In this document: positions 1 through 55,724 of the stretch, piece after piece
Position numbering within the stretch: the first letter of the stretch is position 1
Layout of the letters: the number at the start of each line of letters is the position of its first letter
IMG/VR virus record: IMGVR_UViG_3300030107_006644
Coordinates: 1 to 64,000 of that record
Reading direction: 5' to 3' (one strand)
Length of the DNA: 64,000 nt
Made by a program: the position numbers and the translations under genes
The notes under the pieces: generated by a model
Databases searched by the model: none
What the model was told of the DNA's origin: nothing
The model's input: the letters and a program-made list of their open reading frames with translations, nothing else

Positions 1-69
1 GATCGTGGCAATTTGAAGGCAACAAGCCCCGCACTTTATCAAAAAATACAACAACTAATGGACATTTAA
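1..69 (+). CDS. 3' end of an upstream hypothetical gene (partial)
   Basis: Frame 1 is open from the window edge (DRGNLKATSPALYQKIQQLMDI*) and stops 16 nt before the next ATG, matching local gene packing. Confidence 0.4.
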   Translation, partial: DRGNLKATSPALYQKIQQLMDI

Positions 70-85
70 CAATAATAGGTGAAAA

Positions 86-859
86 ATGACACATATTTCA
101 TTTTCTGAGCTAAAAAATTGGAATTTTTGCCCATTTTACCATAAATTGGTGAATTTGGACAAGATTTCCGGGTTTAAAGGCAACGAATACACGGCTTTTG
201 GTACCGCAATCCACGATGTTTGCGAAAAAGTGGCGTTAAAAGAGGAAATTGACCCCGAATCGCACTTTATTGAGCGATTCGAAGCAGAATTGGCCGATTT
301 GGACGAAGATGTTGAAATTCGACCACAATTGGTCGAATCTATGCGTTTTCAAGGCCGTCAACTGGCTCCTGAAGCGGTTCCGGCCCTTTTTGAGACCTTT
401 GGGTCGTGGGAGTTAGTAGAAGCCGAGGAAAAGCTGTATGAAGACATCAAAGATCACGACGATTACATGTTTAAGGGGTTCATTGACTTAGTAATCAAGT
501 CAGAGGATGGAAAATACCATATTATCGATTGGAAAACGTGTTCTTGGGGCTGGGACCACCGGCGCAAGGCCGATCCGATGACTACTTATCAGCTAACACT
601 GTATAAGCATTTCTGGTGCGCCAAACACGGCGTAGATCCCGAATTAGTTGAAACTCACTTTGCTTTGCTAAAGAGAACTGCAAAAAACAATCGAGTCGAG
701 ATTTTTAGAGTTACAAGCGGTGCTAAAAAAACAAATAATGCTCTTAACTTGCTAAACAAAGCGCTGCATAATATTAAAAGCAAAACTTGCATCAAAAATA
801 GATTATCATGCACATCTGGTTATGGTTGCGAGTTTTACAAGACAGAGCATTGCCCATAA
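86..859 (+). CDS. PD-(D/E)XK nuclease, Cas4/AddB/RecB-like exonuclease with probable Fe-S cluster
   Basis: N-terminal ISFSEL..W.FCP, GTAIH, GFIDLV..IIDWKT catalytic motifs, YQLTLY, C-terminal Cys cluster SCTSGYGCEFYKTEHCP; TAGGTG RBS. Confidence 0.85.
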   Translation: MTHISFSELKNWNFCPFYHKLVNLDKISGFKGNEYTAFGTAIHDVCEKVALKEEIDPESHFIERFEAELADLDEDVEIRPQLVESMRFQGRQLAPEAVPALFETFGSWELVEAEEKLYEDIKDHDDYMFKGFIDLVIKSEDGKYHIIDWKTCSWGWDHRRKADPMTTYQLTLYKHFWCAKHGVDPELVETHFALLKRTAKNNRVEIFRVTSGAKKTNNALNLLNKALHNIKSKTCIKNRLSCTSGYGCEFYKTEHCP

Positions 860-868
860 GGATTATAA

Positions 869-2146
869 ATGACAACAGAGAAAAAAATTAAGATATTAAC
901 AATATCTGACCACCCATTATCTTCTTCTGGCGTGGGGATTCAAACGAACAACATGATTTCCGGTCTTTTGGAAACCGGAAAGTATCAAATTATAAGCGTC
1001 GGCGGAGCTATAAAGCATGAAAATTATGAGCCGCAAAAGACTGATAAATATGGAGATGACTGGATTATATACCCAGTTGATGGATACGGTACCCAAGATA
1101 TGATTCGTTCTATCGTTCAAAACGAAAAGCCGGATATTTTGTGGTTTATGACAGACCCGCGCTTTTTTGAGTGGTTGTGGATGATTGATAATGAAATAAG
1201 ACAACATGTTCCGATGGTTTATTATCATGTGTGGGACAATTACCCATATCCACACTTTAATAAAAAGTTCTACGATTCTAATGATGTTATCGTCACAATC
1301 TCGAAGGTTACAGATGATATCGTTCGGAACGTTTCACCAGATGTTGAGTGTATTAGATTACCCCATTCGGTAGATACTGAACACTATAAACTTATAGATG
1401 AAGCCGAGGTAGATAAGTTTGTTAAAACAAATCCAGCCCTCTCACTGCATCGTGAAAAGGATAAGGTGTTGTTTTTCTGGAATAATAGAAATGCGCGCCG
1501 AAAGCAGAGTGGAAGCTTGTTATGGTGGTTCAAGGAATTTTTAGATGAAGTAGGCGAAGATAACGCGGCGCTTTTGATGCATACAGATCCCAAGGATCCA
1601 AATGGGCAAGACTTGGAGGCGATTCTGCAAGAGCTAGACGCACTGAACGGTCAAATAATGTTGTCGCCGGCTAAGATAGGCAGCGACGATTTAGCGCGAA
1701 TCTATAATGCTGTAGATTGCACAATTAATATCTCCGATGCAGAAGGATTTGGTTTGTCTACTTTTGAGTCACTGATGTGTGGCACTCCAATTATAGCAAA
1801 CATGACCGGAGGTCTACAAGAACAGGTAACCGATGGTAAAGAGTTTTTTGGAGTCGGTATCGAGCCTAGCTCCAAAGCTGTTATAGGTTCTCAGCAGGTA
1901 CCTTATATCTACGAAGATCGAATTAGCAAGGAAGATTTTATAAGCGCCTTGAAGAAGGTCTATAATATGACCAAGGAAGAGCGAAAAGCTCTCGGCGCCA
2001 AGGGCCGTGATTATCTCATGAAAAACTATGGGTTTAAGCAGTATCAGGAAAAGTGGGATGAAGTTCTAACAGATGTGCACAACAAGCATGGTTCTTGGGA
2101 TACTCGAAAAAATTATACAAATTGGACACTTACGGAGGTTGTATGA
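869..2146 (+). CDS. Glycosyltransferase, GT-B fold (GT4-like)
   Basis: N-terminal KILTISDHP..SSGVG, NRNARRK acceptor/donor loop, EGFGLSTFE (ExFGLxxxE) motif, GTPII. Confidence 0.9.
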   Translation: MTTEKKIKILTISDHPLSSSGVGIQTNNMISGLLETGKYQIISVGGAIKHENYEPQKTDKYGDDWIIYPVDGYGTQDMIRSIVQNEKPDILWFMTDPRFFEWLWMIDNEIRQHVPMVYYHVWDNYPYPHFNKKFYDSNDVIVTISKVTDDIVRNVSPDVECIRLPHSVDTEHYKLIDEAEVDKFVKTNPALSLHREKDKVLFFWNNRNARRKQSGSLLWWFKEFLDEVGEDNAALLMHTDPKDPNGQDLEAILQELDALNGQIMLSPAKIGSDDLARIYNAVDCTINISDAEGFGLSTFESLMCGTPIIANMTGGLQEQVTDGKEFFGVGIEPSSKAVIGSQQVPYIYEDRISKEDFISALKKVYNMTKEERKALGAKGRDYLMKNYGFKQYQEKWDEVLTDVHNKHGSWDTRKNYTNWTLTEVV

Positions 2147-4101
2147 GTAAGAAAATTTTAGTAAGAGGCCCCGCAATGTCTCTTTCCGGCTACGGAGAAC
2201 AGTGCAGGTTTGCGCTCAGATCTCTAAGGGCTCATGAGGAACATTTTGATATTTACTTAGCTAACACTGGCTGGGGCAATACAGGGTTTATTATCGAAAA
2301 CGATGAAGAACGACAGTGGATTGATGAAATTTTAAAGAAGACAATTGAATACACTCATGCCGGCGGAACCTTTGACATGTCGCTACAGGTAACGATTCCG
2401 AATGAATGGGAACAGATAGCTCCAATTAATGTTGGTTATACAGCCGGTATTGAAACTACAAAAGTGGCGCCCCAGTGGATAGAGAAGGCTGCAATAATGG
2501 ATCGGATTATTGTTGTGTCGAACCATGCGAAAGAGGTATATGAAAATACCACATATCAAGCTCAGCATCCGCAAACCGGAGAGTCAGTTGAGGTTGGCTG
2601 CACTGCGCCAATTCATGTCGTGAATTATCCTGTGATGCCGCACACTCCAACTGAAATGCCGCTAGAGCTAGAGCATGATTTTAACTTTCTAACGATAGCT
2701 CAATGGGGCCCCCGAAAGAATTTGGACAACACCATTCGCTGGTTTGTAGAAGAATTTATCGATCAGCCTGTGGGGTTGGTGGTTAAAACCTTTTTGCAGG
2801 CCAACTCGACCATTGATCAACACTATACAGAGGCAAGATTGGCGGCCTTATTGAAAGAATACCCAGATAGAAAATGTAAGGTGTATTTGTTGCACGGCTC
2901 GCTGACAAACGAACAGATGTCCGGTCTTTATCAGAATGAAAAGATTAAGGCGTTGGTAAATCTTTCTCACGGAGAGGGATTCGGCCTATCTATGTTTGAA
3001 GCTGCTACTTATGGAAAGCCTGTGGTGTCGCCGAACTGGAGTGGTCAAAATGACTACTTATATGCGCCTGTTACAAATCGAAAAACGAAAAAGTCAAAAA
3101 TTCGACCTTTATTCGCTAAGGTTGATTTCACGATGGGCCGTGTTTTCCCACAAGCAGTTTGGGAAGGGGTAATCCAGCCAGATTCTCAGTGGTGCTATCC
3201 CGACCCGGGAAGCTATAAGATGACTTTGCGAAAAGTATACAAACAGTACAACAAGTATGTGGGAATGGCAAACAAGCTGAAGAAGCATGTACATGAAACA
3301 TTCTCCAAAGAGTCTCAATATAAGCTGTTTGCAGAGGCAACTTTAGGAACAGAGATCCAAACTGTCGACAGAGAAGATCTGCCGAAAATATCCGTAATTA
3401 CTTCTGTTTATAATGGAGATGACTACATTAAGCCGTTTTTAGAAGATATGGTTAACCAAACGATCTTTGATAAGTGCGAACTTATCCTTGTTAACGCTAA
3501 TTCGCCGGGTTCGGAAGAAGAGGTTATTCGTGAATATATGGACAAGCATGACAACATTATCTATAAAAAGCTCGACGAAGACCCGGGAATTTATGGAACT
3601 TGGAACGAGGCGATTAAGCTTTGTACTGGTGAATATATTACTAATGCTAACTTAGACGACCGTAAAGCACCAGATTCTGTTGAGCGCCACGCTAAAGAGC
3701 TTTATTTGAACCCTGATGTCGACTTGGTATATTCTGATTCCTTTATCACGGATCAGCCAAACGAGACATTCAACTCTAACTCGGCTGCCGGCAGAAGATA
3801 TAACTTTTTGCCGTTTAGTTTTGAAAATCTAAAAACAGTAAATATGCCGCACAATAATCCAATGTGGCGCGCCGATATTCATGAAAAGTGCGGAGAGTTT
3901 GATGATAAGTATCGCTCGGCAGGTGACTGGGAGTTTTGGCTCCGTGCAGCATCGCAAGGAAGCAAATTTAAAAAGATTAATGATATCTTAGGGCTGTACT
4001 ACTTTAATCCTGAAGGCGTTTCCACAAACCCTGATAATTTTGAGTGGAAGATGCAGGAGGAACAAGAAGTATACAACAAATATAAGGATCTAACACTGTG
4101 A
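2143..4101 (+). CDS. Bifunctional glycosyltransferase: N-terminal GT4-like plus C-terminal GT2-like domain
   Basis: GYG N-terminal loop, RKN and EGFGLSMFE (GT4), then KISVITSVYN, NLDD, GDWEFWLR (GT2). Start moved from 2095 to ATG 2143 (GGAGG RBS, ATGA overlap). Confidence 0.88.
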   Translation: MSKKILVRGPAMSLSGYGEQCRFALRSLRAHEEHFDIYLANTGWGNTGFIIENDEERQWIDEILKKTIEYTHAGGTFDMSLQVTIPNEWEQIAPINVGYTAGIETTKVAPQWIEKAAIMDRIIVVSNHAKEVYENTTYQAQHPQTGESVEVGCTAPIHVVNYPVMPHTPTEMPLELEHDFNFLTIAQWGPRKNLDNTIRWFVEEFIDQPVGLVVKTFLQANSTIDQHYTEARLAALLKEYPDRKCKVYLLHGSLTNEQMSGLYQNEKIKALVNLSHGEGFGLSMFEAATYGKPVVSPNWSGQNDYLYAPVTNRKTKKSKIRPLFAKVDFTMGRVFPQAVWEGVIQPDSQWCYPDPGSYKMTLRKVYKQYNKYVGMANKLKKHVHETFSKESQYKLFAEATLGTEIQTVDREDLPKISVITSVYNGDDYIKPFLEDMVNQTIFDKCELILVNANSPGSEEEVIREYMDKHDNIIYKKLDEDPGIYGTWNEAIKLCTGEYITNANLDDRKAPDSVERHAKELYLNPDVDLVYSDSFITDQPNETFNSNSAAGRRYNFLPFSFENLKTVNMPHNNPMWRADIHEKCGEFDDKYRSAGDWEFWLRAASQGSKFKKINDILGLYYFNPEGVSTNPDNFEWKMQEEQEVYNKYKDLTL

Positions 4102-4733
4102 AGGTTTATACGTTCTACACGGAATCGCATAAGCGATTTTTAGATGATTATTTTTTGCCTTCATTTGAATCGGTAGGAGAGTATGAATTAGAGCTTCAAG
4201 AGTTTGAGCAAGAATGTCAATCTGGAGAGTTCATGCAGGAAGGCTGGAATAGAACGATGAGGCGTAAAGTTGAATATATAATCCGGGCATGCGAAGAGAC
4301 CATGGGAGGATACTTTATCCACGCAGACATCGACATTCAATTTTTAAGGCCCAGTAAAAACTTGTTACTAAAAGAACTTATGGGCTATGAGATGGTTTTT
4401 CAGAACGATCTAAACATGATGTGTGCGGGGTTTTTTGCTTGCAAATCTAGCAATAAAACACTAGATTTCTTTAATGGCGTTCTTGATGACTTACCAAATC
4501 ATGGAAACGATCAAATAGCTATCAACAACCATCTTCTTCGAGGCGATATTAGTTTTAAGCCGCTACCAAATCAGTTTTATACTGTGGCAATGTCCTTGCA
4601 AGGTCGAGAGTGGGATGGCGATGAATCGTTCGATGTACCCGATGATATTGTATTACATCACGCAAATTACACAAGAGGTATAGACAACAAGTTTAAGCTT
4701 TTAGATTTAGTCAAACAGCAAACGGGGCTATAG
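4098..4733 (+). CDS. Nucleotide-diphospho-sugar transferase (GT-A, GT77-like)
   Basis: RRKVEYI, DxD motif HADIDI, CAGFF, NDQ and HHAN motifs typical of this GT-A family. Confidence 0.7.
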   Translation: MKVYTFYTESHKRFLDDYFLPSFESVGEYELELQEFEQECQSGEFMQEGWNRTMRRKVEYIIRACEETMGGYFIHADIDIQFLRPSKNLLLKELMGYEMVFQNDLNMMCAGFFACKSSNKTLDFFNGVLDDLPNHGNDQIAINNHLLRGDISFKPLPNQFYTVAMSLQGREWDGDESFDVPDDIVLHHANYTRGIDNKFKLLDLVKQQTGL

Positions 4734-5581
4734 TGAGCTACCAAGAAGAAATATATGAAAGGTTTTCAGACTTCCGAAAGCCGGCAGAATTTCCAGTATA
4801 TCCTCCCTATCATGAGGGCCCGTATTTAGAAGAGTATTTTAGCAACAGATTTTTGGAGGACTCTCCTGAAACTGATAAGATCTTTATTCCCGTATATTGG
4901 ACTCATTGCTATAATGATGGATATGACTCAAAGGAACTAAAACAGGCTATAAGCGAGTTAGACTCTTCCCGTTCATATTTCGCCGTCATGACTCACGATG
5001 ACGCACCAAAAGAGCTATTACCCAAAGGTACCACATGCTTTTCGGCCGGCGGCTTAAATGGAGACGTGCCAATTCCGTTGGTGTGTTCGGGATTTAAGGA
5101 TGTAAAGTCGCGACAAAGGGATATTTTTTGCTCTTTTGTTGGCTCTATAACTCATCCGATTCGCTCTATGATGTGCCATTCCTTGCCACTAGACTCTCCC
5201 AAGTATCACATATATATTAAAGGCTGGACGCCCAATATCACGAAAGAGGCGGAAACTGGTTTTAGACAAGTAATGGAAGAATCTGTTTTCTCTTTGTGTC
5301 CTAGGGGGTATGGGCCTACGAGCTTTAGGCTATACGAGGCGATGCAACTTGGATCGATTCCGGTGTATATTTACGACAGAATGTGGCTTCCATGGCAAGA
5401 TGATTTAAACTGGGCAGAGATATCCATCCCAGTGCACCTAAGCAGGTTGCCTGAATTAGATTTAATCCTTTCTTCGATTTCGCAAGAGAGGATTGAGACA
5501 ATGCAGCAAAGTATAGCATCCGTGTATGACGACAATTTTACGTTTGATGCCACATATAGGAAAATATTGGAAAGACTGTGA
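4733..5581 (+). CDS. Exostosin-family (GT47-like) glycosyltransferase
   Basis: SVFSLCPRGYGPTSFRLYEAMQLGSIPVYI...WLPW signature; RDIFCSFVGS. Confidence 0.8.
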   Translation: MSYQEEIYERFSDFRKPAEFPVYPPYHEGPYLEEYFSNRFLEDSPETDKIFIPVYWTHCYNDGYDSKELKQAISELDSSRSYFAVMTHDDAPKELLPKGTTCFSAGGLNGDVPIPLVCSGFKDVKSRQRDIFCSFVGSITHPIRSMMCHSLPLDSPKYHIYIKGWTPNITKEAETGFRQVMEESVFSLCPRGYGPTSFRLYEAMQLGSIPVYIYDRMWLPWQDDLNWAEISIPVHLSRLPELDLILSSISQERIETMQQSIASVYDDNFTFDATYRKILERL

Positions 5582-5919
5582 ATTATAAAGAAGAGCGCCC
5601 ATGGGGAACATTCGAAAATCTATTAGAAGAGAAATATTGCAAGGTAAAACAGATAGTTGTAAAGCCCGGTCATAGACTTAGCTATCAATACCACCATAGG
5701 CGTTCTGAACACTGGGTAATTGTGTGCGGTCAAGCAGTAGTGACTTTAAATGGTGAACAATCTTATCTTACCCCGGGCGAGCATATACATATACCCGTTA
5801 CAAGCAAACATCGAATTCACAACATAGGTAAAAGTGATTTGGTTTTTGTAGAGGTGCAGTGTGGTGATAACTTTGATGAGGAAGATATAGTGAGATTAGA
5901 AGATGATTATTCGCGGTAG
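5578..5919 (+). CDS. Stand-alone type II mannose-6-phosphate isomerase (cupin, ManC C-terminal-like)
   Basis: RPWG, LSYQYHHRRSEHWV, HRI.N, VEVQ.G, EEDIVRLEDDY motifs. Confidence 0.88.
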   Translation: MNYKEERPWGTFENLLEEKYCKVKQIVVKPGHRLSYQYHHRRSEHWVIVCGQAVVTLNGEQSYLTPGEHIHIPVTSKHRIHNIGKSDLVFVEVQCGDNFDEEDIVRLEDDYSR

Positions 5920-5925
5920 GCAGAA

Positions 5926-7818
5926 ATGAATATTATAATTCCTCTAAACGGCTCAGGCCAACGCTTTATAGATGAAGGCTATCAAGAACCAAAGCCGCTG
6001 ATTAAGATACAGGGCAGGCCTATGATTTACTGGGTCGTGGAGAGCCTAGACTTGGATGCTGACGATCAGGTTGTCATCGTTTATAATAGCATGCTGGATT
6101 CCTATGATTTCTGCTCTGCTATTCAAAATCAATTCAGAGAGCTGAACTTTAAGTTTATCCCACTTAAGTATCAGACAAGAGGGGCCGCAGAGACAATATT
6201 GTGCGGCTTAAATAACCTACCATCGGATGATCTGAAGATGTCGTGTATGTTGGTTGATTGCGATACAATATACATGGACAATATAGTGGCAAAGTATAGA
6301 CAAAAGAAGGGAAATGCAATATTTTATTTTGAAGATACAGAGGATAAGCCAATATACTCATATATTGCCATGAATCAAGATAATGAGATATCAGATATCA
6401 AGGAAAAAGAAAAGATATCAAACAATGCAAATACCGGCGCTTATTGTTTTAGCAGTGGGGAACTGTTGAAGCAGTATTGTCAAAAGTTATTGAATTCCGG
6501 AGATAGAAGTAAGAACGAATTCTATATTTCTGGGGTTTATAAAAAGATGATAGAAGACGGTTTAAAGATTACCGGACATCTGGTTGACAGCTTTTATTGT
6601 GTTGGGACGCCGATACAGCTTCAGTGGTTTGCTTCTGCGATAGAGCATGGAGGCAAACAAAGAATTTGTTTTGATATTGACAACACTCTGTTAACTTATC
6701 CCAAAGTTGAAGGTGATTATTCGACATGTGAACCAATACCGGAGCCAATACGTTTTCTTAAATTTCTCAAAAACATGGGACATGAAATAATTTTATACAC
6801 TGCTCGACGTATGAGGACTCACAACGGAAACGTGGGAAAAGTTGTATCTGATATTGGAGACGTAACGATTGCATCTTTGAAGAAGCATGGAATTCCGTAT
6901 GATGAAATATATTTTGGCAAACCTTATGCTAGCTGCTATATTGACGATTTGGCGATAAATCCAAAATTATCTCTGGAAAAGCAGTTGGGGTTCTACAAAA
7001 CTGAGATTAAGCCCCGCGAATTTCACAACATAGAACAAACAAGAGACATGGTTACCAAGCGTGGTGATCTTGCAGGAGAAGCTTACTGGTATAAACACTT
7101 GCCATCAGAATTAGCCGGTTTGGTGCCAAAGATGTATAGCGTGGAAAAAGAGCAACTAATTATGGAGCGGATAAATGGAATATCACTTTCTTATCTGTAT
7201 ATTAACAACTCGTTAACAATTCACAATTTAGAAAACCTTCTTACGGCTCTCGACACGCTTCATGGGTTTGATACAGAGCCGGCGGCAGCTTTTAAGGCGC
7301 GCCAAGGTTTATACGACAATTACGACTTAAAACTATCAAAAAGGTATTGCGAATATGACTACAGTAAGTTTTCAGATTCATATCAAACATACAAAAAGAT
7401 ACACACGAAGTTGTCAGAGTATCGACGACGAGATCTTGCTATTCCGGGCATAATACATGGTGATCCGGTTTTTACAAATGCGCTTCTTGATACGACAAAC
7501 AGTATAAAATTGATAGATCCGCGAGGAAAGCTTGGGGATAAAGAAACCATATATGGAGATATATTTTACGATTATGCAAAGATATACCAGTCCTTGATAG
7601 GTTACGATTTTATATTGCTGGAAAAAGATTTTAATGAACGATATATGTGTGAAATGGTAAAATATTTTGAAGAACACGTAAAAGACAAGTATGGAGTTAA
7701 ACGTTTGGCAGCTGTAAAATTAATAACAGCTAGCATGCTGTTTTCACTAATCCCACTGCATGACAATGATAAGTGTGACAAGTACTACAACTTGATTAGC
7801 GAAAGAGAGCTTCTATGA
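5926..7818 (+). CDS. Three-domain fusion: sugar-phosphate nucleotidyltransferase + HAD phosphatase (capsule BcbF/EcbF-like) + APH/choline-kinase-like kinase
   Basis: IIIPLNGSGQRF..PKPLI (NTP transferase); ICFDIDNTL, YTARRM, GKP..YIDD (HAD); IIHGDPVFTN, LIDPRG, YDYAK (kinase). Confidence 0.8.
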   Translation: MNIIIPLNGSGQRFIDEGYQEPKPLIKIQGRPMIYWVVESLDLDADDQVVIVYNSMLDSYDFCSAIQNQFRELNFKFIPLKYQTRGAAETILCGLNNLPSDDLKMSCMLVDCDTIYMDNIVAKYRQKKGNAIFYFEDTEDKPIYSYIAMNQDNEISDIKEKEKISNNANTGAYCFSSGELLKQYCQKLLNSGDRSKNEFYISGVYKKMIEDGLKITGHLVDSFYCVGTPIQLQWFASAIEHGGKQRICFDIDNTLLTYPKVEGDYSTCEPIPEPIRFLKFLKNMGHEIILYTARRMRTHNGNVGKVVSDIGDVTIASLKKHGIPYDEIYFGKPYASCYIDDLAINPKLSLEKQLGFYKTEIKPREFHNIEQTRDMVTKRGDLAGEAYWYKHLPSELAGLVPKMYSVEKEQLIMERINGISLSYLYINNSLTIHNLENLLTALDTLHGFDTEPAAAFKARQGLYDNYDLKLSKRYCEYDYSKFSDSYQTYKKIHTKLSEYRRRDLAIPGIIHGDPVFTNALLDTTNSIKLIDPRGKLGDKETIYGDIFYDYAKIYQSLIGYDFILLEKDFNERYMCEMVKYFEEHVKDKYGVKRLAAVKLITASMLFSLIPLHDNDKCDKYYNLISERELL

Positions 7819-8507
7819 AAATCGCCCTATGTGTTTCCGGCAAGCCTACGGGCTACGATATAACATTTCCCTTTCTACGTGAAAACATCATAAAAGATCG
7901 AGATGTTGATATCTTTTTGCATTGCTGGGATGAAGGAGGGGCAGAGAAGAAAAAGATACTCTCCCTTTACAGGCCGGTAGCTTATGAATTTGAAAATATA
8001 GCGGTTCAAGATGCATGGCCAACTCAGCATAATTTATCTTCATACACCAATCAACTTCCGGGCGTTAATCCAATAAATGTATTTGGACAAATGTATACGA
8101 TTTATAAGGCTAATGAGTTAAAGCGAAAGCATGAAAAGCACAACAAGGTAAAATACGATGCAGTTATCAAGTATAGATTTGATTTAGCGATAGAACAAAG
8201 GTTGCCAATAGAAGAAATGGATCTTGAGTATTGCTGGTTTAGTCCTCATGGCCCGCGCGGCATGCCAAGAGACTTCTTTTGTATAGCGTCTTCGGAGAAT
8301 ATGGATAAATACGCTTCAACGTTTACACATTTAAAAGATTATTATTTCGCACACAATGTACCTATTTGTGGTGAAGAAATGATATTTCACAACGCGAGGC
8401 AAAAGGGTTTAATACCTAGAACCGTGCTGATTCGTAATGGCCTATACCGACCCCCGGGCCATCATCAAGGCGATGGGGTTATCGTACACTTTCCGCCAAT
8501 ACTGTGA
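7815..8507 (+). CDS. Hypothetical protein, probable glycan-modifying enzyme
   Basis: MKIALCVSG...DIFLHCW...YDAVIKYRFD pattern seen in polysaccharide-locus proteins; coupled to neighbours within the glycan cluster. Confidence 0.5.
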   Translation: MKIALCVSGKPTGYDITFPFLRENIIKDRDVDIFLHCWDEGGAEKKKILSLYRPVAYEFENIAVQDAWPTQHNLSSYTNQLPGVNPINVFGQMYTIYKANELKRKHEKHNKVKYDAVIKYRFDLAIEQRLPIEEMDLEYCWFSPHGPRGMPRDFFCIASSENMDKYASTFTHLKDYYFAHNVPICGEEMIFHNARQKGLIPRTVLIRNGLYRPPGHHQGDGVIVHFPPIL

Positions 8508-8513
8508 GTAATT

Positions 8514-9518
8514 ATGATTTTATATATTGATACATTCGTGACCAACATGCCGCTTTCTGCACATCATGATGGTCGTTCGCCATGGGGATTGCTTAGGCAC
8601 TCCGATTGTTCTTATCGTTGGCGTCCTCGTTTAGAGATTTTCAAGTATACGCTAACCAGCTACGCGGAATATAACTGGTCCAATGTTTATGTTAGGTATC
8701 AACTAGAAGATCCAAACCTGTATGAAGAGGTCAATAAATTTATTAAAGATCTATTTCCAGACGCTTTGATTGAGAATGAACGCAGTGATCGTCAGCCCCA
8801 CTTCATCAAAGCGTATCGAACGCTTCAATCGATGGGTGATAGGTGGATTTTCTATGCGCCAAACAACGATCATCCCATTGTTGCATCGGAATTAAGTATG
8901 CTGGATAAGCTTGTAGATAAGGGCAACGAATTGGAGGGTCGAAATCGCAATTTGATTGGAATGTTTTATTCTCATTTTGATGAGTTCGTACACCTACCTT
9001 ATCCCGGGAACTGGTTCAGCAACATGTACAACAGCGCGGAACAACCCAGAACTATAATTGACGAGGATGACGATACAGTAACAATCTGTAGTAAGTTTGG
9101 CGACAACACAGGCATTCAAATTGTACACATTGATCTGTTTCGCCACTGGTTTATGTCATGGAATTTGGGAGAACACAGGATTATAAGACCTGAGTGTTTA
9201 CGAAATCACTTTTTAACACATGACCAAATAAGCGTGATGCCAAAGAGGGAGATTTGCGCACATTACGATGGTCAGCCATCGTTGAGACCTGAAACGCACC
9301 CGCCCTTGTTTGTACCAGAAGGCTTCTTTGATAACAATGTAAAGGTGAGGTATGGATTTGATGATTACGTTTCAGGCTATGTAAACGTTAATCCAGATGC
9401 AAAAAAATATAGCTTTGAAGATAATAATACCGGTACCGATATTAAAAAGCAAATAGAAGAACTGCCGCTTTTTTGGCAGGATCGAATTAGTGAGGTGAAG
9501 AAAAATGAATCAAAATGA
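8514..9518 (+). CDS. Hypothetical protein in glycan cluster (possible divergent GT-A)
   Basis: 334-aa ORF between glycan genes; WIFYAPNNDHP and CAHYDG resemble GT-A metal-binding elements. Confidence 0.45.
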   Translation: MILYIDTFVTNMPLSAHHDGRSPWGLLRHSDCSYRWRPRLEIFKYTLTSYAEYNWSNVYVRYQLEDPNLYEEVNKFIKDLFPDALIENERSDRQPHFIKAYRTLQSMGDRWIFYAPNNDHPIVASELSMLDKLVDKGNELEGRNRNLIGMFYSHFDEFVHLPYPGNWFSNMYNSAEQPRTIIDEDDDTVTICSKFGDNTGIQIVHIDLFRHWFMSWNLGEHRIIRPECLRNHFLTHDQISVMPKREICAHYDGQPSLRPETHPPLFVPEGFFDNNVKVRYGFDDYVSGYVNVNPDAKKYSFEDNNTGTDIKKQIEELPLFWQDRISEVKKNESK

Positions 9519-10452
9519 AATTTTAGTTACTGGCGGAAGCGGGATGGTTGGCCATGCCTTAAAGCGGGTCATTCCGGAAGCAATATTTGTCTCTTCTAAG
9601 GATTATGACCTTAGAAGCCATTTTGAGGCCGAGATAATGTTTGCCACTCACGCGCCAAAATATGTTATTCACTTGGCTGCTAAAGTTGGCGGAATTAAGG
9701 CTAATATGGAAAAGCTAGGTGACTTTTATAGAGACAATGCATTAATAAATACGAATGTTCTTGAAAGCGCCCGAAGGTTTCGGGTAAGAAAGGTGGTCTC
9801 TTTGCTGAGTACATGCATCTATCCTAATGAGGTTATTTATCCTTTGACAGAGGACCAAATTCATAATGGCCCACCTCATCAATCAAATTATGCTTATGCA
9901 TATGCGAAACGAATGCTGGATATCCAGTCACGCGCGTACAGAGAACAATATGGGTGTAATTTTGTTACAGCCGTGCCAAACAACTTGTTTGGGGAAAATG
10001 ACAATTATGATTTAAACGATTCTCACGTAATACCAGCGATAATGCATAAGATGTATTTGGCTAAACAAAATGGTCAACGCGTGGTATTATGGGGTGATGG
10101 AAGTCCGTTGAGGGAGTTTACCTATTCATTGGATCTCGCAAACATCTTATTATTTCTTATGGAACACTACGACAAGCCAGAACCAATTAATATTGGAAAC
10201 ACCGGAGAATATGCTATTCTTGATATCGCACAGCTGATTGCCTCAAGACTTGGTTATAACGGAGAAATTGTTTGGGATACGACAAAGCCCGCAGGACAAC
10301 TTAGAAAGCCGTCTGATAATTCAAGACTTCACAGCTTGGGATGGAGACCGGAAATGTATACTGATTTTAAGGGCTCTTTGTCATCTGCATGCGATTGGTT
10401 TGTGGAAAACTATGGCACAGCAAGGGGGACCGAAAATGCGAACACGGAATAA
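9505..10452 (+). CDS. fcl: GDP-L-fucose synthase (GDP-4-keto-6-deoxymannose epimerase/reductase)
   Basis: [47 protein letters not shown]. Confidence 0.93.
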
Positions 10453-11464
10453 TAAGACAGCTTTAATTACTGGCGTTACGGGCCAAGATGGTTCTTATCT
10501 AGCAGAACTGTTATTAAACAAGGGTTATCGAGTAATCGGGCTGAAGCGAAGAACTTCTTTAATTTCCACAGATCGAATAAACCACATTTATAATCATCCG
10601 GGATTTGAACTACATTACTCTAGCATGCTCGACGCCGGCTCGATGTATCGCGTTATAATGCAGGAGGAGCCAGATGAAATTTACAACCTTGCCGCACAGT
10701 CTCATGTGCGAGTGTCATTCGAAACGCCGGAAGAAACGGCACAAATTGTAGGCATGGGCACATTGCGTATATTGGAGGCAATTTTAAATATAAACCCTGA
10801 TATTAAACTTTACCAAGCTTCGTCATCAGAGATGTTCGGAGATAATCCCGCTGCTCCGCAAAGCGAAGATACGCAATTTATGCCAGCTTCTCCCTATGCG
10901 TGCTCTAAGGTTTTCGCCCACAACTTAGTACGAAACTATAGGAAGAGCTATGGTATTCATGCATCATGTGGAATTTTATTTAATCATGAGTCTCCCAGAC
11001 GAGGGGAAACCTTTGTGACGCGTAAAATTACAATGGCAGCCGCTAGAATTAAGCTGGGCCTTCAGGACAAGTTGTATTTGGGCAATCTAGATGCTAAACG
11101 CGACTGGGGCTTCGCCGGAGATTACGTGGAAGCTATGTGGAGAATGGTGCAGCAAGATACTCCTGATGACTATGTAATCGCTACAGGCGAAACACGCACG
11201 GTTAGAGAGTTTCTAGAAGCAGTGTTCAACCATGCGGACTTACAGGTCCACAAATATGTTGATATAGATAAGCGTCTTTTCCGCCCCCATGAGGTACCTC
11301 TCTTGTTGGGAGATCCCAGCAAAGCGGAAAGACAACTAAACTGGAGGCCTACAGTTACATTTAATAAATTGGCCAAAATGATGTATGAGGCAGATTTACA
11401 GCTTGTAAAAGAGCAAATTAATGGAAAGAAAGGAGTAAAAAATGACAACATACAAATTAAGTGA
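10436..11464 (+). CDS. gmd: GDP-mannose 4,6-dehydratase
   Basis: [64 protein letters not shown]. Start moved from 10238 to ATG 10436. Confidence 0.96.
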
Positions 11465-11642
11465 TCAAGCACTTGGAGCCGTAATGATGGCACTTCAAAA
11501 GTCTCTATTAGAGCAATCAGATATCGTGCCTGTCTTGAAAGGCTTTGAGCTTACGCCAACAGACGGAAAGGAGACCGAACTATTAGTTACGAACCCTCCA
11601 ACGTTTGAAGTAGACGTTCAGGAAGCTACAGCTGATGCCTAA
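11442..11642 (+). CDS. Small hypothetical protein
   Basis: 66-aa ORF with AAGGAG RBS, overlapping both neighbours. Confidence 0.65.
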
Positions 11643-11913
11643 ATATCGTTATCGATGTCAGTCTTGCAATTATATGTTTGAGATTGTTCATTCGATAACG
11701 GAGCGTTTGGCTGACTGCGATACGTGCGAGGTAAGCGGTTCTCTGCAAAGGGAGCAGTTTACCCCCACTGTAAATATCGGCAGAAGCACTGGCAAGCCAG
11801 ATGGTAGCACTGTACGCGAAAGAGTAGAGGGCTTTATAGAGCAGAGTAGGGATGACTTGAGAGAACAGAAAAGAGAAGTAGAGAAAGAACTTTACAAAGA
11901 GGATAAAAAGTGA
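11635..11913 (+). CDS. FmdB-family zinc-ribbon protein
   Basis: [13 protein letters not shown]...CDTC pattern. Confidence 0.75.
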   Translation: MPKYRYRCQSCNYMFEIVHSITERLADCDTCEVSGSLQREQFTPTVNIGRSTGKPDGSTVRERVEGFIEQSRDDLREQKREVEKELYKEDKK

Positions 11914-12266
11914 AATTAATTGTAGTATTAAGTATTATAAGTATATTGACAACTCTTACGACCGGCTTGTTAGTGTGGTATCTGAGGGGCGTGTTAAGTA
12001 AGTTATTATACGTGTCAGAAAGCATGGGAGATTTCCTAGTTGTAATAGACAACTATGCGTCACATTTAAATAGTGTGTATGAAATGGAGATGTTTTATGG
12101 TGATGAAACGCTGGAAAGTTTAATGAAGCACACTCAGGCTGTAGTAGATGAGGTGGAACAGTTTAGCAGCATTTATTCTCTAACTACTGATTTATCAGAA
12201 CAAGAAGAAGGAGATGAACTTGACGAAGACACCGAAGAGTACGAAGAAGAACTCGCCGCCAACTAA
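11910..12266 (+). CDS. Small membrane-anchored protein
   Basis: N-terminal hydrophobic helix (LIVVLSIISILTTLTTGLLVWYL), acidic C-terminus, GTG start overlapping upstream stop. Confidence 0.65.
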   Translation: MKLIVVLSIISILTTLTTGLLVWYLRGVLSKLLYVSESMGDFLVVIDNYASHLNSVYEMEMFYGDETLESLMKHTQAVVDEVEQFSSIYSLTTDLSEQEEGDELDEDTEEYEEELAAN

Positions 12267-12984
12267 GCCGGCGCCAAAAAAAAGACGCCGCCGTGGTCGC
12301 AAGCAGGGTAGGCACTACTTTACGAAAGACCACGAAAATGCAATTATTAGATATTGCAAAACGAACAGTATGCAGGAGAGAGAAGACCTATATAGAGAAT
12401 TTATAGGGCCCGCATTTAATGAAATGGTTGACAAGATCGTGTTTACATACAAATTCACGACATTGCCGAATATCGATGATTTGAGAGCTGAATGCAAAGT
12501 GTGGTTAACCACTATTCTTGATAAATATGATCCGAATAAGGGCTCTAAGGCTTTTTCATATTTTTCTGTTATTACTAAAAACTGGTTTATCCACAAGGTT
12601 AAGAAGTCTTCCAAGAGGTTGGCGACCGAAATCAATATAGATGATGTTATTTATAGTGAGGCCTATCTTGATGCAAACGAAACTTTGGTAACGCAGCATG
12701 AATATTATCAGCAAAGAAGAGAGAAGGAATTTTGGGAACACTTGTGGAGCGAGATAGATTCGTGGGATACCGGCAATCTGAAAGAAAATGAAAAAAAGGT
12801 TTTGGAGGCCATAAAAATACTGCTGTCTAGCTCTGATGATATAGAAATTTTTAACAAGAAGGCTATTTATTTATACTTGCGAGAAATTACTGGATTGAAC
12901 ACTAAACAAGTGGTCAATAACCTAAATAAGCTAAGAACAAAATATAAGATTTTTAAAACTAAGTGGAACAAAGGTGAAATATGA
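12214..12984 (+). CDS. Phage sigma factor, T4 gp55-like (late transcription)
   Basis: HYFTK..ENAI, region-2-like KYDPNKGSKAFSYFSVITKNW (cf. gp55 FDP.K...FAYFT), C-terminal HTH-like YLREITGLNTKQV; sits directly before the virion genes. Confidence 0.65.
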   Translation: MNLTKTPKSTKKNSPPTKPAPKKRRRRGRKQGRHYFTKDHENAIIRYCKTNSMQEREDLYREFIGPAFNEMVDKIVFTYKFTTLPNIDDLRAECKVWLTTILDKYDPNKGSKAFSYFSVITKNWFIHKVKKSSKRLATEINIDDVIYSEAYLDANETLVTQHEYYQQRREKEFWEHLWSEIDSWDTGNLKENEKKVLEAIKILLSSSDDIEIFNKKAIYLYLREITGLNTKQVVNNLNKLRTKYKIFKTKWNKGEI

Positions 12985-13274
12985 AGAGCTTGGAAGAACT
13001 GCTAAAGGAAGCAGTCGACAACATCCAGCAAGATAGAAGCGTTACTAAAGAGCTGTTAGATGATGTAATAACATATTTGAGTAAAAACGAAGCAAACCAC
13101 CGAGAGGTAGGCCCAGTTGCTGCGAAATATGTGGAAACCCTACAAAGATCTAACGAGCAGCTGGTAAAAATATCTGCGCTTCTACAAAAAAGAGAAACAC
13201 AAGAGGGAAGCTTTAAAATAGATAACGAACAAATGTTTGATTTGATACAGCAGGACGATAAGGAGAAAGAGTAG
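12981..13274 (+). CDS. Hypothetical helical/coiled-coil protein
   Basis: 97-aa ORF, AAGGTG RBS, ATGA overlap with the sigma gene. Confidence 0.65.
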   Translation: MKSLEELLKEAVDNIQQDRSVTKELLDDVITYLSKNEANHREVGPVAAKYVETLQRSNEQLVKISALLQKRETQEGSFKIDNEQMFDLIQQDDKEKE

Positions 13275-14035
13275 TGTCAGACGATTATAACGATATTCCG
13301 ACTAATACAGATTCGCTTTATCCACCCGGTACGCTAAATCCAGATTTGTGGAATAAGGGAGAGGGGGCAATCCAATCCCCGGGATTGGTGCGCCGCGCCG
13401 AGGGAATCCTCTCCGGAGGCCGCTACGGCGCTCTAGAAGCTCGATTAGAGCAGGTAATTGACTTTATCGAGGGAATGGGTTGGAATCCGTCTCGCGAGGG
13501 CCCGTTTAACGCACAAGTGCTAGCGCCTTATGTGTCGTCTAATGGCGTGCCCGGATACATTACGATAGAGGAGTTACGAAATATGGGATGTGTGCCACTT
13601 ACCAATTGGTTATCAAGACTTACTAGTCAGGCACAGGTTCCAGATCTCTTACCGGCAGTTTGGGCTATCATACCAGAATTAGATGTTGGAAGGCCAACTC
13701 CTCAAGCATATAATGGGGGCCCCGCATTGGGTGTCGACGGTGACGCCTTATCTATTGAGACATATCGAATATATGTTGGCAACTACGAGGATCCGCCCTC
13801 GTTGCCGGCAGTTGGCTCTGTTATAAAGGTAGACTTTTTTGATAAGAACCCAAATCTAAGATTTGGAATTTATGAATCAATTGTGGTAGAGCACGATTGG
13901 CATGAGGCATACGATTACAACAATGGCACCTCCGAAGATTCAGCACAGGCTGCTTTCGGCGGAAGTGGTTTGGGAGCAGACGGCCAACCCACAACTACAT
14001 TAGGTGAAATGCCCGAAGGAGACGAAACAGCATGA
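13274..14035 (+). CDS. Putative baseplate hub/spike N-terminal (OB-fold-like) protein
   Basis: LPAVGSVIKVDF resembles the P.vG..V.V.F motif of gp5/gpV/VgrG OB folds; position upstream of baseplate genes. Confidence 0.4.
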   Translation: MSDDYNDIPTNTDSLYPPGTLNPDLWNKGEGAIQSPGLVRRAEGILSGGRYGALEARLEQVIDFIEGMGWNPSREGPFNAQVLAPYVSSNGVPGYITIEELRNMGCVPLTNWLSRLTSQAQVPDLLPAVWAIIPELDVGRPTPQAYNGGPALGVDGDALSIETYRIYVGNYEDPPSLPAVGSVIKVDFFDKNPNLRFGIYESIVVEHDWHEAYDYNNGTSEDSAQAAFGGSGLGADGQPTTTLGEMPEGDETA

Positions 14036-15084: not shown

Positions 15085-15086
15085 AT

Positions 15087-55266: not shown

Positions 55267-55623
55267 ATGAAAGAGAAAACGCTTGAACAAATAATCAGAG
55301 AAGAGCTTGGTAAATTCACAGAAGCAATCAGGTTTGGCTCTAGAGGAGAAGCTGAGGCTTATGGAGGCGACCAAACTGTCGTCCATGAGCCGGGAGACGA
55401 CGAGGGTGGATCCGCTGATCCGTCCGCTGGTCTAAGTGTTGATCGCAGTCCTGCAGAAGAGGCTGTCGAAGACAAGATCTATGATTTAGTTGATGCAATC
55501 AAGCAAATGGGTAAATCAAACCCAGACATGACAGACACCTATATTTACTTATTTAGAGCCCTGCAGCAAGCGGGAGTTAACGTTAGCAGTGTTGCAGTGT
55601 TAGCAGAAGGGAGAAGAAAATGA
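55267..55623 (+). CDS. Leader-tagged small protein (MKEKTLEQIIREEL)
   Basis: Shared N-terminal motif with downstream genes; start moved from 55243 to 55267. Confidence 0.7.
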   Translation: MKEKTLEQIIREELGKFTEAIRFGSRGEAEAYGGDQTVVHEPGDDEGGSADPSAGLSVDRSPAEEAVEDKIYDLVDAIKQMGKSNPDMTDTYIYLFRALQQAGVNVSSVAVLAEGRRK

Positions 55624-55724
55624 AGAAAGTATTACACAAATTAGCAAACCTATTTAATAGTGACCATTGTTGTTGCTGCTGCGGTTGTTGTAGTTGCGAC
55701 AACTGTTCGGGAGCATGTAAATGA
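55620..55724 (+). CDS. 34-aa Cys-rich micropeptide (metallothionein-like), not in ORF track
   Basis: MKKVLHKLANLFNSDHCCCCCGCCSCDNCSGACK*; ATGA overlaps at both ends fill the gap exactly; purine-rich RBS upstream. Confidence 0.75.
   Translation: MKKVLHKLANLFNSDHCCCCCGCCSCDNCSGACK

Follow-up and report, generated by a model that had tools for sequence, protein, structure and literature searches.

We found that ten consecutive, coupled genes on the plus strand of an uncultured phage genome form a glycan locus in which a conserved core, a pair of GT4 glycosyltransferases (GTs), is followed by a serotype-like cassette that is swapped among relatives. The best explanation for this locus, which we put forward tentatively, is that a virion protein may be the acceptor of the glycan; remodeling of a host envelope glycan is the main rival. 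The window analyzed comprises the first 64,000 nucleotides of IMG/VR record IMGVR_UViG_3300030107_006644.

RESULTS

The phage is marine, with an ~205-kb genome, and is a myovirus of a very abundant uncultured clade, with Flavobacterium phage immuto and Microcystis phage Mel-JY01 as the closest relatives in culture. Successive genes of the locus (869-11464) overlap by 1 to 23 nt or are separated by gaps of 6 nt, and profile and fold searches assigned all ten to GTs or sugar-nucleotide enzymes (Table 1). The at least five GT domains counted in a preliminary description made from the sequence alone are present, but the count was too low: with two GTs predicted from their folds, there are about seven (GT4, GT4+GT2, GT77-like, and GT47-like domains, plus a DUF7796 protein of GT6-like fold and one new fold that is GT-A-like).

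Table 1. Features of the glycan locus and its flanks
Feature	Coordinates	Strand	Evidence
PD-(D/E)XK (Cas4/RecB-like) exonuclease, conserved left flank	86..859	+	PF12705 3e-16
GT4a, GT-B glycosyltransferase, core gene 1	869..2146	+	Glycos_transf_1 5.5e-11; phrog_2170 1.4e-27
GT4b, GT-B domain, core gene 2, N-terminal ~400 aa of fusion	2143..3342	+	tblastn, 60/60 loci
GT2 (GT-A) domain fused to GT4b; variable part begins	3355..4101	+	Glycos_transf_2 4.6e-18
GT77-like nucleotide-diphospho-sugar transferase, variable	4098..4733	+	PF03407 5e-8, 33.6 bits (cutoff 22)
GT47/exostosin-like glycosyltransferase, variable	4733..5581	+	PF03016 Exostosin_GT47 5.8e-19; RXYLT1_C 5e-11
Stand-alone cupin mannose-6-phosphate isomerase, type II PMI C-terminal domain	5578..5919	+	PF01050 8.7e-33
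Triple fusion: NTP-transferase, HAD phosphatase, APH-like kinase	5926..7818	+	Profile searches
Sugar-1-P nucleotidyltransferase domain	5926-6645	+	NTP_transferase 8.9e-10
HAD phosphatase domain	6658-6966	+	TIGR01689 capsule phosphatase 2.4e-20
APH/choline-kinase-like sugar kinase domain	6994-7776	+	Weak APH match
DUF7796 protein, predicted GT6-like (retaining GT-A) fold	7815..8507	+	AF2 pLDDT 91.9 and Foldseek
Unnamed family, predicted divergent GT-A-like/nucleotide-diphospho-sugar transferase fold	8514..9518	+	AF2 pLDDT 92.7
Fcl/GMER, GDP-L-fucose synthase	9505..10452	+	NF047922 4e-76, full length, under equivalog cutoff
Gmd, GDP-mannose 4,6-dehydratase	10436..11464	+	TIGR01472 460 bits (cutoff 415); PF16363 6.6e-130
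Right flank: 66-aa ORF, FmdB-type Zn-ribbon ORF, 118-aa ORF	11442..12266	+	Zn_ribbon_8 1.8e-7
Putative late sigma factor, gp55-like	12214..12984	+	phrog_234 4e-7 only (weak PHROG match)

The first two GT domains were conserved throughout the clade. Among 159 related marine phage loci, 60 were informative for the order exonuclease-GT4a-GT4b, and this order, with the exonuclease upstream of the GT4 pair, was unchanged in all 60 as well as in immuto and Mel-JY01. GT4a was 56 to 68% identical to its counterparts in the 60 loci, with a median (59%) on par with that of PhoH (64%), and residues 1 to ~400 of the GT4b fusion showed 35 to 66% identity in the same 60 by tblastn (29% to immuto gp180 and 31% to Mel-JY01). 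Since immuto infects Bacteroidota and Mel-JY01 infects Cyanobacteria, the pair has been kept across hosts of two phyla; this speaks for an acceptor that the phage brings along from host to host. Homologues of GT4a form more than 8000 clusters, metagenomic without exception, and the gene is a pile-up site for co-occurring relatives in metagenomes. The best match among solved structures for both GT4 domains was chlorovirus B736L (3oy2; 5e-7 for GT4a, at low sequence identity, and 4e-5 for GT4b).

Everything from the GT2 domain through Gmd was, by comparison, hypervariable. The interval between GT4b and the right flank ranged from 27 bp to 20.4 kb, and the 76 islands used for gene content held 264 gene families, among them DegT, NeuB, RmlC, UDP-Glc dehydrogenase, C-methyltransferase, and sulfotransferase. 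One relative (L134) carries the GT4 pair alone, with the cassette absent. Island gene content had Jaccard indices of only 0.36 to 0.46 where the flanks were 93 to 95% identical, so that the gene complement of the island changes more quickly than the flanks around it; this is the pattern expected of an exposed antigen. The right flank was kept in nearly all sigma-anchored loci, and the sigma-factor gene product was 58 to 75% identical across 305 viral contigs. The 118-aa ORF of this flank has a hydrophobic segment at its N terminus (KD 2.36).

The variable GTs differed in how widely they were shared. The GT2 domain, which lies in one gene with GT4b (2143-4101) and matched chondroitin synthase (2z86, 1.6e-13), occurred in only 15 relatives and was fused to GT4b in 6. 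No homologue of the GT77-like protein at 40% identity or more, and no counterpart of the GT47-like gene, was found elsewhere among the 159 loci; the latter's product matched the exostosins EXTL3/EXT1/EXT2 (1e-7). Predicted folds suggest that two other variable proteins are GT-like. The DUF7796 protein (family of 1806 representatives; E187 invariant) had no match to a curated family or to the GT6 Pfam and matched DUF7796 weakly, so sequence does not place it within GT6, but its model resembles BoGT6a (4ayl/4cj8; E 5e-8, TM 0.52 to 0.55) and the human ABO transferases GTA/GTB. GT6 enzymes act on fucosylated acceptors, and a GT6-like fold would thus suit a GDP-fucose cluster. The unnamed protein had no match in Pfam, NCBIfam, or PHROG; its 45 homologues, CPR bacteria among them, share invariant N117, D119, E246, and H250, and its fold matches were all of GT-A type, with TM scores of only 0.37 to 0.45.

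The remaining genes could supply GDP-fucose. Both Gmd and Fcl are intact and retain their catalytic residues, and a fucose-containing product, as first proposed, is therefore likely. Fcl aligns with human GDP-L-fucose synthase (4e5y, 4e-91) at the S-T-C, YxxxK, and His motifs. For Gmd, a longer TTG ORF was rejected and the start placed at 10436; homologues of at least 40% identity adjoin the right flank in 30 relatives. The cupin also matched residues 361-466 of TIGR01479 GMP_PMI (1.6e-35), and the kinase/nucleotidyltransferase/phosphatase fusion of the preliminary description was recovered, in the order given in Table 1, with PDB matches to 4evw and 1xpj and with viral NTP_transferase+APH fusions as its atlas neighbors. 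That description spoke of most of a GDP-mannose to GDP-fucose pathway; the genes are there, but the wording understated them, for judged by gene content the cluster could in principle encode a route from fructose-6-P to GDP-fucose. The cupin and Gmd did not co-occur significantly among relatives, so a mannose bypass is read from the present locus alone.

We found no sign of an export pathway. The GTs of the cluster had no hydrophobic span at threshold, and the one segment picked up in any cluster protein lies in the kinase domain and, at 1.65, is borderline, in keeping with the original view that no enzyme has an obvious membrane anchor. None of the 742 ORFs of the 76 related islands had four or more hydrophobic segments, those with one being soluble enzymes, and no polytopic membrane protein was present in the inspected 81% of the genome. 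The reported lack of Wzx, Wzy, and an ABC exporter thus extends from the cluster to these islands and this part of the genome, where no flippase or polymerase, named beforehand as refuting along with host surface conversion, was seen; no priming transferase or ligase was detected there either.

Proximity to virion genes carried less weight than was first thought. The gp25-like and gp6-like baseplate genes were confirmed by profile searches; the sigma-factor call is weak. The adjacency of these genes, previously used to argue for virion proteins (or DNA) as acceptor rather than a host capsule, is weak evidence because the whole genome is a single co-directional gene array and because the neighbors on the left are PhoH, AsnB, SpoU, and the PD-(D/E)XK nuclease.

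DISCUSSION

Three lines of evidence suggest a phage-intrinsic acceptor: the GT4 pair is core, it persists across host phyla, and immuto DNA contains only dA, dC, dT, and fdPreQ1, with no glycosylated nucleoside by LC-MS (PMC10516641), a result that bears on the present phage by homology at 29 to 32% identity. The pairing of Gmd and GMER with an exostosin-like GT and with soluble GTs is that of the capsid-glycosylation toolkit of chloroviruses. PBCV-1 and NY-2A make GDP-fucose with virus-encoded GMD and GMER (PMC9614988) and have an exostosin-like GT (A075L) and soluble, cytoplasmic GT-A/GT-B enzymes but no ER or lipid-export genes. Their host, however, is eukaryotic, their glycan is N-linked to Vp54, and their GDP-mannose is host derived, whereas the present phage, known from its genes alone, adds an isomerase and the triple fusion. 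Mycobacteriophage GTs glycosylate capsid and tail-tube subunits intracellularly (Freeman et al. 2023, as summarized in PMC12619734). Mycobacteriophage systems have few GTs and draw on host sugar nucleotides, and a layout of conserved core and hypervariable cassette is not known from them. Cytoplasmic protein glycosylation is also familiar from Maf enzymes, which modify flagellin, and Maf-type (PF01973) ORFs occurred in three islands bearing NeuB.

The main rival, which we regard as unlikely, holds that the GTs, as peripheral membrane enzymes, modify lipid-linked intermediates of the host (Und-PP-sugar or lipid A-core) and that a host flippase, ligase, or exporter carries the glycan, altered and now fucosylated, to the surface of the cell; superinfection would then be blocked or adsorption of progeny to lysing cells changed. 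Island genes mirror O-antigen and capsule loci; like those loci, the islands have conserved flanks around a hypervariable set of sugar-nucleotide and GT genes and turn over in a serotype-like way. Moreover, the HAD domain falls in a "capsule biosynthesis phosphatase" family, immuto gp180 bears an RfaG-like annotation, the GT2 domain resembles, at 34% identity, the P-SSM2/P-SSM5 GTs of the "LPS cluster," and peripheral GTs in the pathways for O antigen, LOS core, and capsule normally lack TM segments too. Pelagimyophages and cyanomyophages, also marine myoviruses, carry non-syntenic "host recognition clusters" rich in GT and deoxy-sugar genes, and the authors favored host O-chain modification for the hypervariable GT islands of pelagimyophages (PMC7029224). 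Those islands, however, are mixed with tail-fiber genes inside the structural module, whereas the present one lies between the nuclease and the sigma-factor module and holds only sugar genes and two conserved GT4 anchors. Also against envelope remodeling, the priming phosphoglycosyl transferase, Wzx, Wzy, WaaL, and ABC transporter of bacterial loci were absent from the 76 islands, strictly core GT4 genes in a lytic-looking clade across host phyla would be unusual for surface-conversion morons, and L134 retains the pair without a cassette. As counterpoints to a virion acceptor, conservation across hosts would be explained as well by a host acceptor that is itself near-universal (Und-PP-GlcNAc or lipid A-core), and host WecA/Wzx/MsbA could serve phage GTs.

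Transfer to some other cytoplasmic acceptor, be it a nonstructural phage or host protein, a small molecule, or a glycolipid (for instance, to form a storage or compatible-solute glycoside or to inactivate a host factor), seems improbable. Among GT4 relatives in the PDB, sucrose-phosphate synthase, TreT, BshA, and MshA act on small acceptors, and B736L itself has no proven acceptor; yet a small-molecule product or a single regulatory modification is hard to square with seven GT domains and a cassette that turns over in serotype-like fashion.

Least probable of all is that a fucose-containing oligosaccharide sits on a modified phage base and evades restriction, in the manner of T-even glucosyl-hmC, RB69 tri-arabinosyl-5-hydroxycytosine, and methyltransferase/TET/GT gene clusters. 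The nuclease gene adjoins the GT pair in every informative relative, and GT4a weakly passed the cutoff of PF20706 ("GT4-conflict"). The triple fusion matched T4-like phages of the RB69/DLP3 type by tblastn, and the closest characterized relatives of its module feed DNA arabinosylation there, where an isomerase, a kinase, a 1xpj-like HAD phosphatase, and a MurU-like nucleotidyltransferase precede GT4-fold transferases (PMC13326640); glycans on DNA reach trisaccharides (bioRxiv 2023.12.21.572611). In RB69/DLP3, however, the isomerase is a SIS arabinose-5-P enzyme, not a cupin PMI followed by Gmd/Fcl, and only kinase and transferase are fused, whereas one chain holds all three activities here. 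Moreover, 81% of the present genome revealed only Dam and dCTP deaminase/dUTPase, with no 5-hydroxy- or hydroxymethyl-pyrimidine synthase, ThyA-like hydroxylase/hydroxymethylase, C5-methyltransferase, or TET/5mYOX label; seven GT domains and the nonulosonic-acid, sulfo-, and methyl-sugar genes of relatives exceed known DNA glycans; and immuto, with the same core, has the nucleosides listed above.

We return to a virion protein as the most likely acceptor. In the scheme that we infer for donors, mutase bypass, and order of transfer, GT4a and GT4b would add the first sugars to an acceptor common to all clade members, and the 7.3-kb strain-specific cassette would extend and diversify the glycan. 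The cupin isomerase would convert fructose-6-P to mannose-6-P; the kinase and HAD phosphatase domains would shift the phosphate to C1, via mannose-1,6-bisphosphate or free mannose, bypassing phosphomannomutase; the nucleotidyltransferase domain would make GDP-mannose; and Gmd and Fcl would convert this to GDP-L-fucose. In favor of this route, the fusion follows the isomerase-kinase-HAD-nucleotidyltransferase logic by which phages are described to make NDP-arabinose (PMC13326640). The GT2, GT77-like, GT47-like, GT6-like, and new GT-A-like domains may then assemble, still in the cytoplasm, a hetero-oligosaccharide that contains fucose, with no need of a lipid carrier, flippase, or polymerase. 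The acceptor would be a phage structural protein, and particles would leave the cell bearing a variable glycan coat.

Gene content and genomic setting of the glycan locus

Ten plus-strand genes, which overlap by 1 to 23 nt or are separated by 6-nt gaps, occupy positions 869 to 11464, and family scans together with fold models bear out the preliminary description of a glycan gene cluster here (see the table). The Gmd product scored 459.8 bits against TIGR01472 (cutoff, 415), as expected of a GDP-mannose 4,6-dehydratase equivalog. Fcl aligned end to end with human GDP-L-fucose synthase (4e5y; 4e-91), including the STC, YAYAK, and SHV motifs, and has the catalytic Ser/Cys, Tyr-x3-Lys, and His of a GMER in place; its NF047922 score was 256 bits, under the 500-bit equivalog cutoff. 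The two unnamed genes were modeled from homolog alignments (pLDDT, 92 to 93). The model of the DUF7796 protein matched BoGT6a and ABO transferases (Foldseek probability, 1.00; E value, 5e-8; TM score, 0.52 to 0.55), pointing to a predicted GT6-type retaining GT-A fold; CAZy GT6 membership was not recovered from its sequence, which had no GT6 Pfam match and matched DUF7796 at 0.0056, below the cutoff. For the 334-aa protein, all fold matches were nucleotide-diphospho-sugar transferases at TM scores of only about 0.4, suggesting a divergent GT-A-like fold. Since both unnamed genes are also GT-like by predicted fold, each of the ten genes appears to encode a GT or a sugar-nucleotide enzyme. There are about seven GT domains, so that the initial count of "at least five" was an understatement. 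A hydropathy scan found no hydrophobic span in any of these GTs, as in virus-encoded soluble GTs without a signal peptide or TM segment. Among 50,697 phage records, megablast found nothing that matched the cluster. The 334-aa family also occurs in candidate-phyla-radiation bacteria (Gribaldobacteria and Levybacteria; homologs P0011 and P0017) at ~41% identity.

Genes of the glycan cluster and the basis of each assignment
Product or domain	Position	Strand	Basis
GT4 (GT4a)	869-2146	+	Family scan
GT4 (GT4b) fused to GT2	2143-4101	+	Family scan
PF03407, GT77-like	4098-4733	+	Family scan
Exostosin/GT47-like	4733-5581	+	Family scan
Cupin PMI domain of type II PMI-GMP enzymes	5578-5919	+	Family scan
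Nucleotidyltransferase-HAD phosphatase-APH-like kinase fusion	5926-7818	+	Family scan
DUF7796, 230 aa, GT6-like fold	7815-8507	+	Predicted structure
Unnamed 334-aa protein, divergent GT-A-like fold	8514-9518	+	Predicted structure
Fcl	9505-10452	+	Family scan and alignment to 4e5y
Gmd	10436-11464	+	Equivalog cutoff passed

The viral contig IMGVR_UViG_3300030107_006644, whose first 64 kb form the window, is 205,517 bp long. It is circularly closed, because its final 19 kb, running from ClpP to PhoH, p96, and an ATLF-like gene, continues into window position 1; the contig end splits the ATLF-like gene (window 1 to 89 and L182:18312-18899, L182 being a further part of this genome). The same genome was recovered in Tara Oceans assemblies of 158.5 and 205.1 kb, and since the second of these (205,080 bp) agrees, this ~205-kb genome is complete. 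It is one co-directional gene array. The 81% that we inspected (JGI 1 to 148.5 kb and 186.6 to 205.5 kb) includes head, neck, sheath, and baseplate genes and also encodes a split PolA, Pol III alpha, RecA, DnaB, RNR, GroEL, two ClpP proteins, and an amidase.

Several other features were seen in this genome. A dCTP deaminase/dUTPase gene adjoins a Dam-type N6-adenine methyltransferase gene (fetched loci L178:15416-16350, L178:19643-20278, and L005:1443-2057 contain these together with ClpP, GroEL, and polymerase genes). In the head module, a ribosomal protein S21 gene (L171:14937-15191) lies amid prohead protease (S77) and head genes, and a gp23-type capsid protein (636 aa) and a sheath protein (1164 aa) are encoded downstream in L173 and L174. 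Giant ORFs at 15087 to 23465 (2792 aa) and 27552 to 39830 (4092 aa; weak Laminin_G_3 match) flank gp25-like and gp6-like baseplate genes; their products, probably proteins of the fibers or the baseplate periphery, are candidates for accepting or binding the glycan. A 347-aa protein (54222 to 55265) with a weak Tubulin (PF00091) match in the precomputed annotations may be a PhuZ-like phage tubulin. Finally, a 34-aa ORF (55620 to 55724) inside a 97-nt gap ahead of a 504-aa gene has 10 Cys among its last 18 residues; it may encode a metal-binding or RiPP-like peptide or may have arisen by chance.

A conserved GT4 pair is joined to a hypervariable cassette

IMG/VR contained 305 relatives for the putative sigma factor downstream of the cluster and about 600 for PhoH upstream, and 80 loci were fetched per anchor. 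On the left side, the order PhoH-p96-ATLF-exo-GT4a-GT4b was the same in every locus that extended far enough (60/60), with a median identity to the relatives of 59% for GT4a and 64% for PhoH. The right side (a 66-aa ORF, a Zn-ribbon ORF, a 118-aa ORF, sigma, and further ORFs) was also kept. The stretch between GT4b and the right flank ranged from 27 bp to 20.4 kb among relatives and is 7.3 kb long in this phage. In relative L134 (14667 to 16027), 27 bp separate GT4b from the 66-aa ORF of the right flank, leaving the core pair without any cassette.

The 10 kb adjoining the right flank in 76 loci held 742 ORFs in 264 families. Those sampled included DegT aminotransferases, UDP-glucose dehydrogenase, NeuB, cytidylyltransferases, RmlC, SDRs, PfkB kinase, SIS and HAD enzymes, C-methyltransferase, radical SAM/B12 enzymes, sulfotransferase, and GT2. 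The GT2 domain that is fused to GT4b here is itself part of the variable stretch, being found in 15 loci and fused in 6. None of the 159 loci had a homolog of at least 40% identity to the GT77-like, GT47-like, fusion, GT6-like, or 334-aa genes; at the same threshold, Gmd was present in 30 and Fcl in 18, and Fcl never occurred without Gmd. Locus pairs with flanks 93 to 95% identical had 36 to 46% of island families in common, and for flanks 75 to 85% identical the median was 18%.

Metagenome contigs mapped to positions 869 to 6868 gave a similar picture: many diverged relatives stacked on GT4a, at up to 6 to 24x this phage's own depth, and the cassette part was covered only at that own depth. 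A variant ~1 to 5% diverged, with the same cassette, was present in a second metagenome sample. This mapping showed presence and relatives' pile-ups only, and no RNA run containing the locus was identified. Public data hold at least 8000 GT4a homolog clusters; the best 120 of these have 61 to 71% identity, and all those among the matches listed lie on metagenomic contigs of ~200 kb or less.

The nearest cultured relatives, Flavobacterium phage immuto and Microcystis phage Mel-JY01 (TerL identities of 45% and 41%, respectively), both have a PD-(D/E)XK nuclease gene followed by GT4a and GT4b homologs and then by a GT-A gene and other sugar genes (aminotransferases, methyltransferases, and an epimerase). 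Because both share the nuclease-GT4a-GT4b arrangement, the core pair is older than the split of phages now on different bacterial phyla. The lineage of the "moraphage" paper was set aside as different (mostly freshwater, 200 to 307 kb); that paper only lists possible GT roles. Since the GT4 pair is strictly core, we rejected a simple moron. We conclude that the locus is real and self-contained and serves to build a glycan in the cytoplasm, with two conserved GT4 genes as its core and a fucose cassette particular to the strain.

Predicted route to GDP-fucose

In the triple-domain fusion, the N-terminal domain matches sugar pyrophosphorylases, the HAD domain matches PDB 1xpj (2e-14), and the C-terminal domain clusters with APH-type kinases of viruses; in phages and giant viruses, fusions of such kinases with NTP transferases are common. 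The cluster thus encodes together the predicted activities of an isomerase/kinase/HAD/nucleotidyltransferase module (AfhE/AfhF-like; RB69 gp51-55), with a 1xpj-like HAD and an APH-like kinase fused to the nucleotidyltransferase. In the RB69/DLP3 route to NDP-arabinose (2026), an isomerase is followed by a kinase, a 1xpj-like HAD phosphatase, and a MurU-like nucleotidyltransferase (PMC13326640). This phage has the module logic in common, but with a mannose-6-P isomerase at the start and Gmd and Fcl at the end. Because the fusion matches this logic and PMI, Gmd, and Fcl are present, we infer a route from fructose-6-P through mannose-6-P, mannose-1-P, and GDP-mannose to GDP-L-fucose that would dispense with phosphomannomutase. 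Co-occurrence of the cupin and Gmd among relatives was not significant (p=0.77), so that comparison with relatives lends the mannose bypass no support; the fusion might make some other NDP-sugar, with GDP-mannose coming from the host.

The glycan acceptor

The acceptor is quite possibly a virion protein, a reading that we put forward tentatively. It fits a GT4 pair that is strictly core, a cassette that turns over in a serotype-like way, and the complete absence of lipid-pathway parts. It also fits, by analogy, the chloroviruses, whose capsid protein receives its glycan through GMD, GMER, the exostosin-like A075L, and soluble GTs. Chlorovirus B736L was the best solved-structure match for both GT4 domains. 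Maf enzymes O-glycosylate flagellin in the cytoplasm; Maf-type (PF01973, MptE-like) ORFs occur in three NeuB-bearing islands of relatives (L013:1237-2187, L017:1258-2118, and L119:17988-18905) and hint at protein-directed nonulosonic-acid transfer in some of them. The preliminary description had argued for virion glycosylation from the adjacent sigma and baseplate genes, an argument that carries little weight, since the other neighbors, upstream, are nonstructural (PhoH, AsnB, SpoU, and a nuclease). A sigma-70 promoter/terminator scan of positions 1 to 16000, whose scope did not extend to Bacteroidota-type promoters, gave counts near the shuffled expectation. The candidate late-promoter motif CTATTTAT, which precedes two structural genes, was found 5 times versus 3.4 expected and was rejected as not enriched. 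Neither the scan nor the motif count yielded a timing signal for the locus.

Remodeling of the host envelope through host machinery is a rather unlikely role for the locus. O-antigen and LOS-core GTs are likewise peripheral and TM-less, and Und-PP-GlcNAc and lipid A-core are near-universal acceptors. For similar islands, the pelagimyophage authors favored modification of the host O-chain, without experiments (PMC7029224). As for a surface polysaccharide exported by the phage's own proteins, four or more hydrophobic segments were found in none of the 742 island ORFs (76 loci) and in none of the 310 ORFs in the inspected 81% of this genome; the few single-segment island ORFs were SDRs, dehydrogenases, cupins, and small Mpo1-like proteins. 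The cluster had no Pfam match to a priming polyprenyl-phosphate sugar transferase, and relatives' hydrophobic-segment candidates were soluble enzymes. Across the islands and the 81%, we found neither the priming transferase nor the flippase, polymerase, ligase, or ABC exporter of a Wzx/Wzy- or ABC-dependent locus. Flippase or polymerase genes elsewhere in the genome, which, together with host surface conversion, the preliminary description had regarded as incompatible with virion glycosylation, are likewise missing from that 81%, because no polytopic membrane protein or exporter label occurs there. The sole membrane-like feature near the glycan locus is the clade-conserved 118-aa ORF (11910 to 12266) between the island and the sigma gene, which has a strong N-terminal hydrophobic segment (KD, 2.36).

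Some other cytoplasmic molecule as the recipient strikes us as improbable, and DNA as very doubtful. DNA keeps a low weight because GT-A or GT4-like enzymes elsewhere do build DNA glycans of one to three sugars (bioRxiv 2023.12.21.572611; PMC13326640), despite the negatives here. No base-hydroxylating enzyme (ThyA-like dCMP hydroxymethylase, 5hodCMP synthase, or C5-methyltransferase with TET/5mYOX) was among the precomputed Pfam labels of the inspected 81%, in which many genes are unlabeled. Moreover, LC-UV-MS/MS of digested virion DNA from immuto, a proxy that shares the core, revealed dA, dC, dT, and fdPreQ1 in place of dG and no glycosylated nucleoside (PMC10516641). Seroconversion of the gtrABC type was rejected because its membrane parts (GtrA flippase, GtrB, and polytopic Gtr) are absent, with no TM proteins in the hydropathy scan and only a weak phrog_841 match (3e-4) on the soluble GT2 domain.

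Implications

Precedents exist for islands of glycan genes in marine myoviruses, for glycosylated virions of mycobacteriophages and chloroviruses, and for the kinase/HAD/nucleotidyltransferase module. As far as the searched literature shows, the layout is new: a conserved core and a hypervariable cassette, clade-wide, abundant, and fully soluble, with two new GT-like families. Regardless of the acceptor, the cluster provides a compact, soluble, predicted route from fructose-6-P to GDP-fucose without phosphomannomutase, and DUF7796 and the 334-aa family are two uncharacterized GT-like families for enzymology. We consider it possible, with some doubt, that a lineage among the ocean's most abundant large phages covers its particles with a glycan of its own making, in which the two core GT4s fix the inner part and cassettes (fucose, nonulosonic acids, and amino-, methyl-, and sulfo-sugars) swapped between close relatives supply the outer part, giving "glycan serotypes" like bacterial O-antigens, wholly cytoplasmic and without lipid carriers. 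Immuto, being cultured, opens the acceptor question to experiment. Should the particle prove to be the acceptor, a globally abundant marine phage clade would have virion glycosylation as a core trait that diversifies, and the phenomenon would cease to be a peculiarity of mycobacteriophages and giant viruses. It would then matter for host recognition, for how readily particles stick to marine gels and mucus, for rates of grazing and decay, and for the reading of "auxiliary metabolic" sugar genes in viromes.
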